From Tetramitus jugosus (Eukaryota > Protista > Heterolobosea), in contig OW569375.1 of assembly GCA_937625935.1 (NCBI GenBank), positions 372,001-436,000 of the forward strand: a stretch of DNA of 64,000 bases, read 5' to 3'. Made by a program: the position numbers and the translations under genes. This document shows positions 2,285 to 28,424 of the stretch, in pieces (the stretch's first letter is position 1; every line of letters starts with the position of its first letter). The notes beneath the pieces were generated by a model. That model saw nothing but the letters and a program-made list of their open reading frames with translations, made no database searches and was not told the origin of the DNA.

Positions 2285-3226
2285 TTATTCGAACATGTCA
2301 TATCCCCAATGATCAACCGGATTGATATATCTTTCATTCTTATTGAGAAGCTTCATTTGCTCCATGTCTTGCTCTGAGAGTTCAAAATCAAATAGTTGAA
2401 TGTTCTTTTCGATCCGTTCTGGTGTGACTGACTTTGGGATGACGACAATATCTCTTTGCAAAGCCCATCGAAGCAAAACTTGAGCTGTGGTCTTGCCTAA
2501 TCGTTCCGCAATTTGCTTTACAACAGGATCGTTCATTGGTCCCTCAGGACGGTTCGATCCTAGTGGAGAGTAGGCCACAGTACGAATATCAGCAATCTGT
2601 CGCGATTGTAACACGAGCTTTTCTTGACTCAAATATGGATGAATTTCGACTTGATTGACCACTGGTTGAATAGTCGCGCTCGATGATAGATTCATCAAGG
2701 ATTGAGTTGAGAAATTACTGACACCAATGCTCTTCACCAACCCATCCTTGACCAATTGTTCCATTTGTTGCCACGTTTCATGCATGGGCGCTCTCTCCAA
2801 CAGAACAGGACTATTCTTACTCGATGGATCCGCTCTCTTCAACTTGTACTGCGTTTTATCATACAAATCAATTCCATTGTACACAATACTCAATGGCCAA
2901 TGAATCAAATAGAGATCCAAATAATCGAGCTTCAAATCCTTCAAGCTCTTTTCACATGCCTCTCGTACATGCTTGTGATGAGTGTTCCACAACTTTGATG
3001 TCACAAACAAGTTTTGTCTCTGTTGTCCTTTGTTGACACCTTGCTTTTGCAGTGCCGAACCAATGTCCTTCTCATTCAGATAAATGCTGGCACAGTCAAT
3101 GTGAGTATAACCAGATTTGAGAGCAGATTGGATGGAAGTATGGATCTGATCGGGTGTTGCTTGCCACGTACCCAGACCAATACTGGGCATCATTCGGCCA
3201 TTGTTGAGTCGAACCAATTGCTTCAT
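2285..3226 (-). CDS. Aldo-keto reductase (AKR1-like)
   Basis: MPSIGLGTW, HIDCASIY, LFVTSKLW, DLYLIHWP, IGVSNF, NQVEIHPY, IPKS motifs. Confidence 0.95.
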   Translation of the reverse strand: MKQLVRLNNGRMMPSIGLGTWQATPDQIHTSIQSALKSGYTHIDCASIYLNEKDIGSALQKQGVNKGQQRQNLFVTSKLWNTHHKHVREACEKSLKDLKLDYLDLYLIHWPLSIVYNGIDLYDKTQYKLKRADPSSKNSPVLLERAPMHETWQQMEQLVKDGLVKSIGVSNFSTQSLMNLSSSATIQPVVNQVEIHPYLSQEKLVLQSRQIADIRTVAYSPLGSNRPEGPMNDPVVKQIAERLGKTTAQVLLRWALQRDIVVIPKSVTPERIEKNIQLFDFELSEQDMEQMKLLNKNERYINPVDHWGYDMFE

Positions 3227-3584
3227 TTTGTTTTTATGCTTGGTGACGACGGAGGAACGACGGACAAATTCAATCCTATGAATGGTGAATTACTCTAAGA
3301 GATGGTTGTCATCAACCGAGCAATCAATGTGGTGGAAGTCACAGGTTCCTCTTTTCCTTCCAACAGAGTTGGTATCGTATCGGTTCCGAATCGGAACTTG
3401 TTCCAACACCAGATTGGAGGTTTTCTCTTTTGATGTGTTGGGAGAATCTCTTTTCATTATCCCGATGTCATCGCAACCGAGGGAGGTTATGACAACCTAC
3501 GAAACAACCAACAAACAAAGGTCAGAAAACTAACAAATCACTTTACCAAACCGCCATATATACTTCTGTACTAAACCTGTTATC

Positions 3585-4748
3585 ATGTCTGACAACAATA
3601 ACAACAATCATCCGAATGTGGATAACAACATGAGTGCTCCACCTCAACCTACTCAACAACAACCACCACAAGCACATGAGAATCACACTGCTCTTCCTCC
3701 TCAACAACAACAACAGCAGCAATACATGTACCAAGGATCTCCACCTCCTCAACAACAACAACAACAACAACAACCTTATTATTATCAACCACAACCACAA
3801 CAACAACAAGTAGCATATAATCCACAAATGACAATGCCTCAAATGGCCTATCAACAGCAACCACCCGTGGCAACTTATCCTCAACAACCAATGGTCATGC
3901 CTCAACAACAACAACAACAATATGCTTACAATCCACAACTACAACAACCACAACCACAACAACCAATGCCATATCATCCACAACAACCACAACAGCAGCA
4001 GCAACAAATGATGATGCAACAACCACAACAACAAATGATGGTACCTCAACAACAACAACAACAAGCGGTTGTTGCACTGCCACAGAATGGTGGATCCATG
4101 ATTGATCAAGTGTTTGGACCCAATTCAAGAGCACTTGTCAAACAGAGAATTGAACCGTTTGAGATGTTGACTGGATTCGAAACAGAGAACAAGTATGACA
4201 TTAATTTTGAGAATGGATACAAGGCTGTTGCCATGGAAGACAGTGAATTCTTTGCTAGGTGGTGCCTGGGTAGTGCTAGACCATTCAAGATGCACATCAT
4301 GTTCAAGGACAATAAGCAAGAGTTCTTAACTTTGGAGAGACCATGGAAATTCATGTTCCATGAAGTCAAAGTCTTTGAAACGTTGAACAATAAGAAGTAC
4401 TTGGGAAAGATTAAGCTTCGATGTTCTTTTTGCACAAAGGAAATGTCCATTTTTGATGACAAGGATCAAATGATTTATCAAATCATTGCACCATTCTGTT
4501 CCTTCTGGACGTTCTATATTGAGACAGTGGACGGTCAACGTGTGGGTGAAGTGCGTAAGAAGTGGTCTGGATTCCTGAAGGAAATGTATACTGATGCGGA
4601 CAATTTTGGTGTTCAATTCCCGCCAACTGCCACACCTACTCACAAGGCAGTCTTGTTAGCAGCCACCTTCTTGATCGATTTCTTGTATTTCGAGGACAAC
4701 CAAGGCAATCGCAACAACAGAAACCAGAGTATAATGTTCTCTAACTAA
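3585..4748 (+). CDS. Phospholipid scramblase (PLSCR family) with Gln/Pro-rich N-terminus
   Basis: EMLTGFETENKY, KKWSGFLKEMYTDADNFGVQFP and KAVLLAATFLIDFLYFE are hallmark scramblase segments. Confidence 0.93.
   Translation: MSDNNNNNHPNVDNNMSAPPQPTQQQPPQAHENHTALPPQQQQQQQYMYQGSPPPQQQQQQQQPYYYQPQPQQQQVAYNPQMTMPQMAYQQQPPVATYPQQPMVMPQQQQQQYAYNPQLQQPQPQQPMPYHPQQPQQQQQQMMMQQPQQQMMVPQQQQQQAVVALPQNGGSMIDQVFGPNSRALVKQRIEPFEMLTGFETENKYDINFENGYKAVAMEDSEFFARWCLGSARPFKMHIMFKDNKQEFLTLERPWKFMFHEVKVFETLNNKKYLGKIKLRCSFCTKEMSIFDDKDQMIYQIIAPFCSFWTFYIETVDGQRVGEVRKKWSGFLKEMYTDADNFGVQFPPTATPTHKAVLLAATFLIDFLYFEDNQGNRNNRNQSIMFSN
3650..4065 (+). repeat. Imperfect (CAA)n low-complexity tract encoding poly-Q/P
   Basis: Runs of caacaacaa throughout the scramblase 5' coding region. 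Confidence 0.85.
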
Positions 4749-23115: not shown

Positions 23116-24690
23116 ATGACAGCCACACGATTACTCATAACATCATCATCACACCACATGACAGACACCAATTCCGAACGAACAGATGACTCTGCTGCGC
23201 TCGCACCAACCAACCACAGCGGCAAGACATCTGAACTTCGCAACAGAGCTACACCAATTGTACATCAAGACAATAGTGTTGAAGCTTCTTCAGGTGATGA
23301 TACCATTGTAAAAACAACTACCACTCTTCACCAGAGAAAAGTGACTGCCAATGTGGCTCAAATTGAAACATCTTCATTGAACAACAATAAGGTGACTACA
23401 ACGACCTTGACCACAGAATCGATCACAACGACATCTACCCAGAGAATAGAGTCACCGATGAGCATGAGAGTATCTCACTTTCCGCATGAACCAATGAGTA
23501 GACCTTCGATATTCACTCTTCCAGAACATCAAGGCTTCCTCAACTTGGCTGCTGTTCTCATGATTGGTTGGTGTGTCATCCAGATGCATCACACGCATTC
23601 CATGATTGGACAATTGCTTGATTTCGAGCTGCTCAGGCAATTAATGAGAGATTTTCCCATGCTCATGTTGTTGTGGGTCGGTGTCCTCTCATTTGAATGC
23701 ACGACTGCTGTCTTGTTTGAATATGCGTACACTCGGTTCAGTGTATTGAGGTCTGGCGGCGTTTTGGATAAGCTGACGATCCTGTGCTATGTAGCCAATG
23801 TAGCTACCATGTTTTCTCTTCCAGTGTATGTTGCACTCAACAGGGACATGAGTCCATTGTTGAGAGGAGCTTTGGCCATTCAAATCTGTGTCGCCGTGTT
23901 CAAATATCACAGCTATTTCATGACCAATCGATACTTGAGACAAGTGAATGAATCGAGAAAGAAGACTATTGTCAAACGATCTTTGATTTCACTCATTGGT
24001 GACTATGTTGACTTCATAACGATGCCTACGTTGGTCTATGAGAAGAACTTTCCTCGAAAAGACAAAATCGAATGGCGTTATGTGATCAAGGAGTCTACAG
24101 GTGCACTTATCTGCTTCTTGTGTCTCTATCTGATTATGCAAAATCATTTTGTAGTGTACCTGGACCGTTTAAACGAGATGCCATTCTACGGTCACTTGTA
24201 CATGTTGGGAGTGCCATCACTGTTCATGTGGCTCGTTGGATTCTATGGGGTGTTTCACTGCGTGTTGAATGTGATTGCTGAAGTGTCCAGGTTCCAAGAT
24301 CGAGAGTTCTACTTGGCATGGTGGGACTCAACATCCATGTCTCAATTCTGGAGATTGTGGAACCGAGCAGTGTACAAGTTCATGTGCAGACACATTTACG
24401 TAGAGAGTATGAGAACTGTTCCCTTCTTCAATCGAGTTTGGGCCGCAGTTTCCACCTTTGTCGTCACTGCCATCTTCCACGAGTATGTGTTGGCAGTGGC
24501 ATTCGGTCTCATCAGACCCTACTTTTTCACCATGATCTGTGTTCAGATCCCTTACGTCTTCTTGACTGACAAGTTCCTAAAGGGAACGCGAACGGGAAAC
24601 ATTGCCATGTGGGTTGGATTTGTAGTTGGTTTCCCACTCCTTCAGCTGTCTTATTCATATTCCTATTTGGCTAAAAGCTCAAAGCAATAA
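23116..24690 (+). CDS. MBOAT sterol/diacylglycerol O-acyltransferase (ACAT/DGAT1 family)
   Basis: FKYHSY, PTLVY, FHCVLNVIAE..RFQDREFYLAWWDS, FWRLWN, FHEY catalytic His; multiple TM helices. Confidence 0.92.
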   Translation: MTATRLLITSSSHHMTDTNSERTDDSAALAPTNHSGKTSELRNRATPIVHQDNSVEASSGDDTIVKTTTTLHQRKVTANVAQIETSSLNNNKVTTTTLTTESITTTSTQRIESPMSMRVSHFPHEPMSRPSIFTLPEHQGFLNLAAVLMIGWCVIQMHHTHSMIGQLLDFELLRQLMRDFPMLMLLWVGVLSFECTTAVLFEYAYTRFSVLRSGGVLDKLTILCYVANVATMFSLPVYVALNRDMSPLLRGALAIQICVAVFKYHSYFMTNRYLRQVNESRKKTIVKRSLISLIGDYVDFITMPTLVYEKNFPRKDKIEWRYVIKESTGALICFLCLYLIMQNHFVVYLDRLNEMPFYGHLYMLGVPSLFMWLVGFYGVFHCVLNVIAEVSRFQDREFYLAWWDSTSMSQFWRLWNRAVYKFMCRHIYVESMRTVPFFNRVWAAVSTFVVTAIFHEYVLAVAFGLIRPYFFTMICVQIPYVFLTDKFLKGTRTGNIAMWVGFVVGFPLLQLSYSYSYLAKSSKQ

Positions 24691-24918
24691 ATAGGAATAG
24701 ACTTTCCGTTTTTTGATATGAAATCTCGAAGAGTCAACTCTATTTTCGGTGTTGATCCCCAGATGTACATGATGGACATGTGAATCAGCTCAATGCACAT
24801 CAGTGTTCTGCGAGCGATATTAGTACCAAAAAAACAAACGATCGACCAAGGAAAGAAGAAGAACTTGTTGTTGGTTGATGAAAAAATCGCGATTCCACGC
24901 TCACAAGCTCAAACAGCA

Positions 24919-27667
24919 ATGACAGAAACACTAGGCGCTCCTCCACCCTTATCCTTGGAGGCACCTACGACACCCTCTGTGGATTATGACGACGAAGAAA
25001 TTCAATCAGAGAGTGAAGACATGCAAGAACCCATACTACAGAGACACCGTAACAGCACTCGAGCACAAGAACAGCCACAACAGAGACGGAAGAAGAACAA
25101 TCTGAGAATGAAGAGACGAAAGAGAGGATGGTACTCTTCAGTTGTAGAAGAAAGCTCATCGGATGAGGAGGACAACGAAATGGATGAAGACTATGAGAGA
25201 GCTACGGGATTTATAGACACTGGGTATGTGGTATCTGTTTGAGAGCTTTCATTTTGATTCGTCAGTACCTTGCTAACGAATCGTATCATTTTGCGCATCT
25301 CTATTATTATGTATGTGAATTATTTTACAACACAGATTTCGATATTTTTTGGCGGGTTGTATCGCTGTAATCCTCCTGGTGATTGTGATCTATGCAGTTG
25401 TAGTGTTCCTATGGAATAGTGTGCCCAATTCCTACATTGGAAACCCATTCTTATTGTTTGTGGAGGCATCATCCGATGCTCTCATTGCCTTTGCTTATTT
25501 TATCATTCCCTTCTTGCTCATATTTCTGGTGAGGAATCGGAAGGATTTGCCCTTCAATTGGATCTTTTTAATGTTTGGTGGCTTTATATTGTCCTGTGGT
25601 ATGACTCATTTTGTAAATACATTTGGGCCTTGGGTTCATCCACAGACACGGATCGTCATTCATGAGCGAAGCCTTTGGTTCACTGTTCTGTCGGCCTGTG
25701 TCAAAACCTTTACGGCCATTATCTCATTGATTACAGCGGTCGCATCATTTGGTTTGATGCCACTGGCTCTCAAGCTCCCCAGTCCAACTCGGTTACAAAA
25801 GGAGGTTGATACTCGGAAACAGGCAGAGCACGACCTTCAGAACCAGTATGAACGATCTCTGTTGATCTCGAGTATCACCAACAAGATTCGTAACTCGTTT
25901 CACACGCAAGACATTTTCCAAATTGCAGCGACGCAAATTGGTAGTGTAATGAGAGCTTCTCGATGCACCATTCATCGTTACAAGAGGAGTGCGTCAATGG
26001 AGAGAGCTCAGATTCCGTGCGAAGCAGAATACCTTCATCCAAACTTTCCCAGCAAGAGTTTCTTGGATGTTGATTTACCGATTACAGGGTTCATGACACA
26101 AGTGCTAGCCAATGATGATGTTCTTGTCGTACGAGTGAGCGAACTGCTCCGCTCTGATGATGATGAAGATCGGTTGGTTGGTACGATTCTATCTCGTTAT
26201 GAGGTCAGATCCATCATGTGCGTTCGGACATCATATCAAGGCTCTCCTAATGGCATAGTCATGCTCCACCAATGCCAGGGCAATCGAACCAAGTGGACAA
26301 CAGAGGATATGCGATTCCTGAAGGATCTAGCCGCTCAATTGGGAATTGCTCTCCAGCAGACATATCTATTGGAGAGGGAAAGGCAGAGATATGAACTAGA
26401 GATACAGAATGTGAAGCTGGAGAAGGCCAAAGAGACAGCAGAAAGAGAGAATAGGGCGAAAAGCGAATTTTTGTTAATGATGAGTCATGAAGTGAGAACT
26501 CCTTGCAATGCAATTATCGGTATGAACACTCTTTTACAAAAGTCTGAGTTGAACAATGAGCAATTTGAGATTACGCGTATTATCGAAGACAGTGGCAACC
26601 TACTTGTAGAAATTATTAATTCTTTCCTCGATTTCAGCAAGCTCGAGTCTGGCAAGCTGGAACTCCAAATGCAGCCCTTCCATCTTAGTCATGCACTAAA
26701 AGGTTGCATTGACATGTTTGTGATGAATGCTAAGAAGGAGAGGAATATTACAGTTCAGTTGAACCCAAACCACGATACACCCAAATATATCATTGGAGAC
26801 AAGTTTCGATTTCAGCAAATCTTAATCAACCTGATCAGCAACGGAGTTAAGTTTACCGAGTCTGGAGGAGAAGTGACAGTCAATACCGAGGTGGTGAGCC
26901 AAGAATCAGATCAGATTATTATTCAATTTTCGGTGACAGACACTGGCATTGGAATACCAGAAAACCAAATTCAGTATCTTTTCCAACCATTCAGTCAAGT
27001 TCACTCATCTGGTATGACTCGGAGATGCGGTGGTAGTGGTTTGGGCCTAAGTATCTGTAAGAAGTTGTGTGAGCTCATGAGCGGGCGCATTTGGGTGACA
27101 ACAAAGTCAGGAAAGGGTAGTACCTTTTATTTCATTCTTCCCTTTGGGGTGTGTGCCCCTTCTCCAGACTCTAATGATCCATCCGAGGACGGTGAGATCA
27201 CGGGTGTATCAAATTCTGAAACAGAGACCAATGAACCCACATTAGGAATAGAACCAAATTTCGACGCGAAAATATTAATTGCCGAAGACAATATCATCAA
27301 CAAAAAGGTGGTCGTATCTCTGTTGAATAAGGTTGGGTATCGACGAGTCGATGTGGTCAGTGATGGAAAGATGGCTGTCGAGGCGGTGCAACGAGAAAAT
27401 ATTGACAAGAAAGGAACTCAAGAGTATGAGCCTTATTCTTGCATCTTGATGGACTTGATGATGCCAGAGTTAGATGGAATAGAAGCTACAAAGATCATTC
27501 GAGGAATGCTGGCAGATTCCAACGAAAAGCATTTGAACATCATTGCTCTCACTGCAAACATTCAAACTGATATTCAATGTCAATGCAAAGAAGCAGGCTT
27601 TGACGAATTCTTGTCTAAGCCATTCAAGTTGGATCAATTGGAAGCAGTAATGAAAATATACAATTAA
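24919..27667 (+). CDS. Ethylene-receptor-like hybrid histidine kinase (ethylene-binding TM domain, GAF, HisKA, HATPase, REC); exons 24919-25223 and 25336-27667
   Basis: SDALIAFAYFIIP...FGGFILSCGMTH; SHEVRTP H-box; NLISNGVKFT, DTGIGI, FQPF, GSGLGL; REC AEDN/MDLMMP/SKP. Intron 25224-25335 (GTATGT..GCTAAC..CAG) is in frame. Confidence 0.9.
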
Positions 27668-27686: not shown

Positions 27687-28322
27687 TTATCGATTGTCTA
27701 TAATTGTATCGTGTCTCTTCCTCTTCTTCAATTCATCATCCTTCAGAACATCAATCAATTGAGGACCTCGTGCTAGCAAAGGACAGTTCGAATCAAAAGG
27801 TTCAAAGTTGTAGTACATGATACACTCGTAATGGTAGTCAATATCCTTCAAGTTGAGTACTCCTCCTCCTTCCATCTCATTCACTTCATCAATTTCTTTA
27901 ATGATTGCATTCTCTTCCATTGTTATTTCTCCCTGCTCCAAGTACTTTAATCTTTTCTTTACGCTGTAAGGACTGTTCTCATCAAAATGATAAACATCCT
28001 TTAATGTTTTTGTCAGATCCGAAATCTTAGTCTCTGGTAGCATCATGTCCTTCCACAATTGTAGATCGTGTATCGTTCCTTCATGTCTCTCTAAGATCTT
28101 CTGTTCAATTACGACAAGCGGAGTACTGTCCAGAACTCTTAATGAGAAACTTAAATGTTGCCACATGATCAATCGCAAGTGAAGTTTCACATAGCGGTCT
28201 TCAATTACCTCAAACTCCTCTTCAGACGGTGGCGTATATCTCGATGCATACTCTGTCAATAGTCGATCAATAACCTTGCGTGAAGATCCTCCAGCTTGCT
28301 GACCCCCCTTCTTTTTAACCAT
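27687..28322 (-). CDS. Hypothetical protein, possible ubiquitin-like fold
   Basis: Long ORF; probable start MVKKKGG (alternative 28376). YVKLHLRL...STPL..IEQKI..RH pattern is UBL-like (weak). Confidence 0.65.
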   Translation of the reverse strand: MVKKKGGQQAGGSSRKVIDRLLTEYASRYTPPSEEEFEVIEDRYVKLHLRLIMWQHLSFSLRVLDSTPLVVIEQKILERHEGTIHDLQLWKDMMLPETKISDLTKTLKDVYHFDENSPYSVKKRLKYLEQGEITMEENAIIKEIDEVNEMEGGGVLNLKDIDYHYECIMYYNFEPFDSNCPLLARGPQLIDVLKDDELKKRKRHDTIIDNR

Positions 28323-28424
28323 TTGTGTTGTGTCCTCGCGGCCTTTGATGGCGAACTTTGTTGGAGAACGCTCCATCTACGGTCGGTGAGAAAAATTGTC
28401 CGCTTTATTCATCAGCAAGTGAAA

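Follow-up and report, generated by a model that had tools for sequence, protein, structure and literature searches.

Ethylene receptors are best known from plants, and the locus described here raises the question of whether a heterolobosean amoeba, Tetramitus jugosus, possesses an intact receptor of this type and, if so, what it may sense, which pathway it may feed and where the gene came from. The candidate gene lies within a stretch of 64,000 nucleotides (hereafter, the window) of contig OW569375.1 in assembly GCA_937625935.1 (26.35 Mb in 56 contigs; the window is contig 32, 372001-436000). An original prediction, made from the letters alone, had proposed an intact ethylene-receptor-type hybrid histidine kinase of non-plant origin at this position and regarded it as its best candidate for an undescribed system. 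The first of these proposals is upheld by the domains, the residues, the reading frame and the splicing, and the predicted product is a membrane-bound hybrid histidine kinase of the ethylene-receptor (ETR1_N) family. Taken as a whole, the explanation that we favor, with a probability of roughly 60%, is that this kinase senses an ethylene-like ligand, signals into a relay controlling cyclic AMP (cAMP), and is of bacterial origin.

Gene structure and the ethylene-receptor module

The six-frame list of open reading frames (ORFs) contains a 772-codon frame on the forward strand (25349-27667) that has no ATG at its head. The gene model comprises two exons on that strand, 24919-25223 joined to 25336-27667, with a product of 878 residues; residue numbers given here are those of the ORF at 25349, and full-length numbers are higher by 106. 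The ATG at 24919 opens an upstream frame leading to a GT donor after 25223, the AG acceptor ends at 25335, and codon 102, left incomplete by exon 1 (305 nt), is completed by one base of exon 2 (25336), after which the frame of the long ORF is followed. In a contig from run X1 that is 98% identical to the window, 25222/25223 is joined to 25335/25336, with 112 nt bounded by GT..AG skipped; therefore, the intron is real, and the gene is transcribed and spliced. The more distant contig from run X2, representing a related strain, carries out-of-frame indels upstream of 24919 (14 nt in total) and frame-keeping indels just downstream (+3, -3), a pattern that supports the ATG at 24919 as the start, so that the beginning given in the original prediction fits the two-exon model.

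Contig pieces 95-99% identical to the gene were found in soil metatranscriptome libraries from at least two separate studies (runs X2 and X3); one such piece extends unspliced into the intron, and DNA carry-over is possible for that piece. For the run X1 transcripts compared with the window, 34 differences are listed, 19 of them synonymous changes and 15 replacements, the latter mostly in linkers and fewer than neutrality would give; this synonymous excess and linker placement indicate purifying selection on the receptor. The gene is present once in the assembly (six-frame profile search); it is intact, spliced and transcribed. Homology searches were run for each exon separately, with the exon 2 ORF as the query; exon 1, scanned against Pfam only (within the frame 24793-25239), produced no Pfam match.

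The ETR1_N profile (PF25487) matches residues 35-143 with a score of 89.5 bits (cut-off 27), spanning model positions 2-97 of 97, and a six-frame search of the genome gives a matching result. The seven sensor residues D43, Y50, I53, P54, I80, C83 and H87, separated by steps of +7, +3, +1, +26, +3 and +4, correspond at a constant offset of +18 to D25, Y32, I35, P36, I62, C65 and H69 of Arabidopsis ETR1, in a comparison resting on published residue numbers and the Pfam model; the full list of seven reportedly goes back to Wang et al. (PNAS, 2006). The codons of D43 (GAT, 25475-25477), C83 (TGT, 25595-25597) and H87 (CAT, 25607-25609) were read directly. The predicted spacing holds throughout, and in a phmmer alignment of 218 ETR1_N-bearing proteins the seven columns are nearly invariant (D 99%, Y 100%, I 95%, P 99%, I 98%, C 100% and H 100%), with the consensus residue in 7/7 columns of the window protein and with C83 and H87, whose alignment the prediction had depended on, in fully conserved ones. 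K119 corresponds to Lys91 of ETR1, and 99% of the 218 domains have Lys at that position. In ETR1, copper is coordinated by C65 and H69, while the binding of both copper and ethylene depends critically on D25, which is coupled to helix 3 through K91 (PMC10266040); I35, P36 and I62 also count among the essential binding residues (PMC6586836). A search of the PDB returned ETR1 and ERS1 as cytosolic pieces only, with no solved sensor domain.

Downstream of the sensor, Pfam matches above the cut-off were obtained for GAF (186-335), HisKA (370-435), HATPase_c (483-599) and Response_reg (642-767). The phosphoacceptor H380 is embedded in SHEVRTP, the N-box is at 494, G1 (DTGIG) at 531, the F-box at 545 and G2 (GSGLGL) at 562, and the receiver has E646/D647, D702, T735 and K757; hence the GAF domain, the complete HisKA/HATPase pair and the receiver with its acceptor Asp, all of which had been read from the sequence beforehand, are present with every box intact. 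Direct reading of GAF 186-335, which Pfam identifies as a generic GAF, detected no bilin-type Cys-His dipeptide (0/4 Cys precede His), making a bilin photosensor like SynEtr1 unlikely. On every sequence-level test of membership, the protein falls within the ethylene-binding-domain family and has an ETR1-type architecture.

The order of ethylene-binding domain, GAF, histidine kinase and receiver is that of Arabidopsis ETR1 (subfamily 1), as are the intact kinase and receiver residues and the equally spaced counterparts of the seven sensor residues and K91. Unlike ETR1, the amoeba protein has four hydrophobic segments rather than three, with an extra first helix (TM0) and a charged N-terminus of 106 residues both preceding the Pfam domain, and a longer loop between transmembrane helices 2 and 3 (the TM2-TM3 loop), and it lacks the N-terminal Cys pair that links ETR1 dimers through disulfides; its kinase part resembles bacterial hybrid kinases far more than it does that of ETR1. 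TM0 is reminiscent of the additional hydrophobic segment found in subfamily 2 receptors of plants. With four helices, both termini should be cytosolic. In most bacterial homologues among the matches listed, the domain begins about 20 residues from the N-terminus, which leaves no room for TM0 or the extension, and the TM2-TM3 loop is about 10 residues shorter in bacterial domains.

Table 1. Coordinates of the receptor gene and its parts in the window
Feature	Position	Strand	Basis
Exon 1: ATG and 101-residue charged (acidic and basic) N-terminal extension	24919..25223	+	End set by spliced contig
Spliceosomal intron, 112 nt, GT..AG, phase 2	25224..25335	+	Run X1 spliced contig
Exon 2: remainder of receptor, including stop codon	25336..27667	+	ORF, Pfam, spliced contig
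Extra N-terminal membrane helix TM0, ahead of the three canonical helices	25337..25414	+	Hydropathy segment 1-28
ETR1_N ethylene-binding domain, three transmembrane helices, with D43-H87 set and K119	25451..25777	+	Pfam, 218-protein alignment
Cys83...His87, predicted Cu(I) ligands, helix 2, one turn apart	25595..25609	+	Alignment; role from PMC10266040
GAF domain	25904..26353	+	Pfam
HisKA dimerization/phosphoacceptor domain, His380 codon 26486-26488	26456..26653	+	Pfam, motifs
HATPase_c catalytic domain with N, G1, F and G2 boxes	26795..27145	+	Pfam, motifs
Receiver domain, acceptor Asp702 codon 27452-27454	27272..27649	+	Pfam, motifs

The upstream neighbor (23116-24690, forward strand) encodes an MBOAT-family membrane O-acyltransferase of the eukaryotic type in a single frame of 524 codons. 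The convergent downstream gene (27687-28376, reverse strand), which has no Pfam domain, ends about 19 bp from the end of the receptor gene, so the 3' untranslated regions of the two must overlap.

Proposed phosphorelay, ligand and output

Profile searches of the genome yielded about 30 HisKA loci, three histidine phosphotransfer (HPt) domains and about 40 matches to the receiver (REC) domain. One HPt domain belongs to a protein on contig 11 (a 295-residue frame, 46.9 bits) with the canonical HTLKGSS motif, and the other two are the C-termini of REC-PDEase_I proteins. Genes for the latter class of enzymes, which resemble RegA, are located on contig 5 (L016 1116-4121, forward), contig 12 (L017 3384-5927, reverse) and contig 17 (L030 about 2420-4687, forward), with the C-terminal HPt fused in two of the three. 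All REC domains found outside hybrid kinases lie in these three genes, and the two-component network consequently appears to converge on cAMP phosphodiesterases. The HPt protein, the three REC-phosphodiesterases and two copper ATPases are the relay and copper-supply components to which the original prediction had pointed. Both of these P-type (P1B) ATPases pass the cut-off of the copper-translocating model TIGR01511, and the genome further encodes a small HMA protein that resembles copper chaperones and has an MxCxxC motif; copper supply is present, as in most eukaryotes.

This complement, with many hybrid kinases, an HPt protein and RegA-like enzymes, resembles the relay of Dictyostelium and Acanthamoeba, in which a kinase signals through RdeA (an HPt protein) to RegA; it differs in that two of the three RegA-like proteins have their own C-terminal HPt and in that no Dictyostelium kinase is known to have an ethylene-binding domain. 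We know of no HPt fusion of Dictyostelium RegA. In Dictyostelium, RegA is regulated by sensor kinases that act upstream of it; Naegleria likewise has RegA and upstream kinases, and in Polysphondylium and Acanthamoeba encystation is under RegA control (PMC3906536). Because every REC domain found outside the hybrid kinases belongs to a RegA-like enzyme, RegA-type cAMP phosphodiesterases are the likely output of the receptor, which may feed RegA in an amoeba-type relay, and the expected route differs from the CTR1/EIN2 output of ETR1. A six-frame, exon-by-exon search for EIN3 (PF04873) gave no match and is uninformative because the control genomes were equally silent. Elsewhere on contig 32, at 58.6, 62.5 and 86.3 kb, there are three similar hybrid histidine-kinase paralogues, the identical HisKA scores of which suggest recent duplication.

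The mechanism that we propose would start with Cu(I) held by Cys83 and His87, which, together with Asp43, would bind ethylene or a closely similar small unsaturated ligand within the helix bundle. The Asp43-Lys119 link would pass the change to helix 3, and the GAF and coiled-coil region would modulate autophosphorylation of His380. The phosphoryl group would then move from His380 to Asp702 and on to an HPt domain, either that of the 295-residue protein on contig 11 or one fused to the RegA-like enzymes, and from there to the receiver of the RegA-like phosphodiesterases, setting cAMP levels; cAMP, as in other amoebae, may in turn govern encystation or another stage switch. In ETR1, ethylene is reported to lower kinase activity. 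Should the same apply here, RegA activity would go down, cAMP would go up and encystation would be favored.

Several observations speak against this reading. Ethylene binding and signaling by this protein and its amoeba homologues are deduced from sequence. The ETR1_N domain scores 89.5 bits compared to 120-154 bits for bacterial domains, has the longer TM2-TM3 loop and, in the 218-protein alignment, carries non-consensus residues at V38, F59, A116 and S133; the homologue from a sister amoeba (see below) has Thr at the position equivalent to Ile35; and, with about 5,700 cluster representatives containing the domain and very few assayed, what a divergent member binds is uncertain. On the output side, some 30 kinases share the few HPt and RegA proteins, so that the link between the receptor and cAMP is generic. 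Modeling of the receptor receiver with the contig-11 HPt protein as a complex gave 0.37 against 0.00 for the best control, graded by the tool as 'weak support', and solved REC-HPt complexes may be remembered by the model; the runs agree in at least 69% of contacts, the partner pLDDT (predicted local distance difference test) is at least 77, and the mark used is one that 51 of 78 solved complexes attained, as did 2 of 108 mismatched pairs. This predicted complex was not counted as evidence of binding.

The strongest competing explanation accepts the same relay and a copper-binding domain but assigns it another cue, such as copper or redox status, oxygen-related signals, or a different small pi-ligand (carbon monoxide, isocyanides or larger alkenes). 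Bacterial ETR1_N proteins number in the thousands and are mostly uncharacterized, and both the divergence of the amoeba domain and the Thr of the sister protein fit such a shift; nevertheless, the protein retains the full set of seven residues that ETR1 needs for ethylene binding, together with the Asp-Lys pair, and ethylene binding has been confirmed in members of the family as far apart as plants and Synechocystis (PMC10266040), for which reasons we consider a different ligand unlikely, albeit the alternative to be taken most seriously.

Origin of the gene and its host

Only one close homologue, P0001, was found in two large protein collections, with 62% identity overall and about 70% in the sensor. 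It is encoded on a 27-kb metagenome contig (L002) together with eukaryotic genes, two of which have adjacent orthologues on contig 25 of the present assembly (61% and 38% identity), so P0001 belongs to a related (sister) amoeba. The divergence between the two receptors (62% identity) is about that of the neighboring housekeeping peptidase (61% identity), and TM0 is 58% identical at the sister locus (L002 9804-9875). The neighbors in question, an M16 peptidase gene and an ARID gene, adjoin each other in both genomes (contig 25:164283-170843 and L002 828-5996); they flank the receptor gene in the sister amoeba, and here the receptor is on contig 32, such that synteny is broken at the receptor. 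The sister receptor was called without its first helix (L002 9804-9950), and TM0 lies upstream in another frame, which implies an extra intron between TM0 and helix 1 in that amoeba.

Below P0001, full-length identity falls to 38%, and the next proteins are cyanobacterial hybrid kinases (Scytonema, Rivularia, Phormidesmis, Nostoc and Oscillatoria); when aligned over about 78% of the query, the GAF-kinase-receiver part shows 36-39% identity with kinases of Scytonema, Rivularia and Nostoc. The sensor alone matches 5,663 cluster representatives in an exhaustive search, with best identities of 45-55% among the best 150 of the 5,663 matches, and its named best matches beyond the amoeba pair are cyanobacterial (40-53%; Coleofasciculus, Chroococcidiopsis, Lyngbya and Nostoc) along with some Rhodocyclaceae. 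A word-indexed sensor search returned bacterial proteins and the sister amoeba protein only, and the protein-atlas neighbors of the sensor are bacterial ETR1_N clusters. With more than 100 bacterial kinases the kinase-receiver core attains scores of 300-330 bits, compared to at most 227 bits with the amoeba's own paralogues, and in the kinase tree the nine own paralogues sampled lie on one side of a 100* branch, apart from the receptor pair.

The cyanobacterial ETR1_N kinases thus provide the closest sensors and the closest GAF-kinase-receiver parts, and some of them (in Coleofasciculus, Oscillatoria and Nostoc) are multi-sensor hybrid kinases with ETR1_N, GAF and REC. They differ from the amoeba protein in usually having PAS domains or a bilin-binding GAF, often with a fused HPt, and in lacking TM0 and the N-terminal extension; Synechocystis SynEtr1/Slr1212, a light and ethylene sensor with a bilin GAF, is set apart by description only. 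Judging from these similarities, the ancestor of both amoebae likely acquired the gene from a bacterium, probably a cyanobacteria-like one, before they split, and the intron, the fourth helix and the charged cytosolic N-terminus were likely gained during domestication after the transfer.

With respect to this origin, too, there are points on the other side. No donor can be named, as no protein exceeds about 53% identity in the sensor; the closest counterparts of the sensor domain are found in PAS-rich proteins and those of the kinase core in proteins that lack the sensor, which makes a mosaic origin possible; and the kinase tree has long branches and a polytomy. The trees were built without plant, fungal, amoebozoan and diatom receptors, a sampling that leaves room for vertical inheritance from an early eukaryote or for gain from another eukaryote (plant, alga, fungus or amoebozoan), and the sensor-domain core is presumably about equally similar to those of plants and cyanobacteria. 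ETR-type receptors do occur in several eukaryote supergroups (PMC6324907). The full-length search, however, revealed nothing between the sister amoeba (62%) and the cyanobacterial kinases (38%), with no intermediate-identity protein from Naegleria, Willaertia or Acrasis in a collection that holds proteins of these taxa; the kinase fragment of Arabidopsis ETR1 (4pl9) matches at 1.6e-21 compared to 4e-56 for bacterial kinases; and no ethylene-receptor homologue is among the 24 kinases of Naegleria gruberi (Kabbara et al., PMC6324907). A eukaryotic source is therefore, in our estimate, improbable, and clearly more so than a different ligand.

The host was identified from cytosolic HSP90, the best named matches of which are Willaertia magna (77%), Naegleria (75%) and Acrasis kona (74%). 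Identity alone left the host undecided (Willaertia 77% versus Closterium 76%, with no plant above 76%), and the HSP90 tree was needed, in which a 100* branch divides green plants and algae from the heterolobosean side, where this genome falls. The non-plant origin that had been asserted thereby stands, a plant or algal contig being ruled out and the gene being expressed and spliced. Bacterial best matches could also be expected if the gene came from contaminating DNA (of a bacterium, plant or alga) or were a functionless relic in decay, but this is extremely improbable given that a spliceosomal intron is removed in RNA, that the gene is inside a contig of at least 436 kb and adjoins the eukaryotic MBOAT gene, that its GC content is that of its surroundings, that the frame is open with all motifs intact, that synonymous changes dominate, that the sister orthologue is conserved like a housekeeping gene, and that green plants are excluded by the HSP90 tree. 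The contaminant, pseudogene and plant-origin readings were rejected, being refuted as far as sequence data allow. Copies of the HSP90 gene (contig 9, 374571-376103) that are 99-100% identical occur on short JGI metagenome contigs, indicating that public environmental data include this organism or a strain very close to it.

An additional lineage for a scattered receptor family

The scattered protist and fungal homologues of ethylene receptors have been catalogued, and, to our knowledge, none has an assigned function. Non-plant ETR-like kinases resemble the protein described here in having three helices, all ethylene-perception residues and a heterotrophic or non-plant host, and differ in belonging to other supergroups; they were compared by description only. 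The original prediction overstated its case in speaking of an undescribed system, given that ETR-type receptors have been reported in early-diverging fungi, Capsaspora (CowczHK2), Acanthamoeba and the diatom Fistulifera, with none in Excavata (Kabbara et al. 2018, PMC6324907). A literature search combining ethylene receptors with Heterolobosea, Discoba or Acrasis recovered no earlier report for Excavata/Discoba, and what is added is a new lineage, Discoba (Heterolobosea), for a known, scattered receptor family.

On the origin that we consider likely, the gene would be a clear example of how a eukaryote can domesticate a bacterial sensor, having gained an intron, a helix and an N-terminal extension. 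The receptor is also unusually testable, being single-copy, expressed in culture-type data and present in soil metatranscriptome libraries, and, with the non-hybrid response regulators all cAMP phosphodiesterases, the expected output is concrete and measurable. The finding is relevant to the question of whether ethylene from plants or microbes is a signal on which soil protists eavesdrop. The most far-reaching version, in which this amoeba lineage reads soil ethylene through a bacterially derived copper receptor kinase that acts via HPt, RegA and cAMP/PKA on encystation, excystation or feeding, is put forward tentatively, as a possibility about which we are more doubtful than confident. If true, ethylene from waterlogged, root-rich or microbially active soil would be an environmental cue for these amoebae, perceived by a route unlike that of plants, and this would be the first ethylene signaling pathway with a defined output in a non-plant eukaryote.

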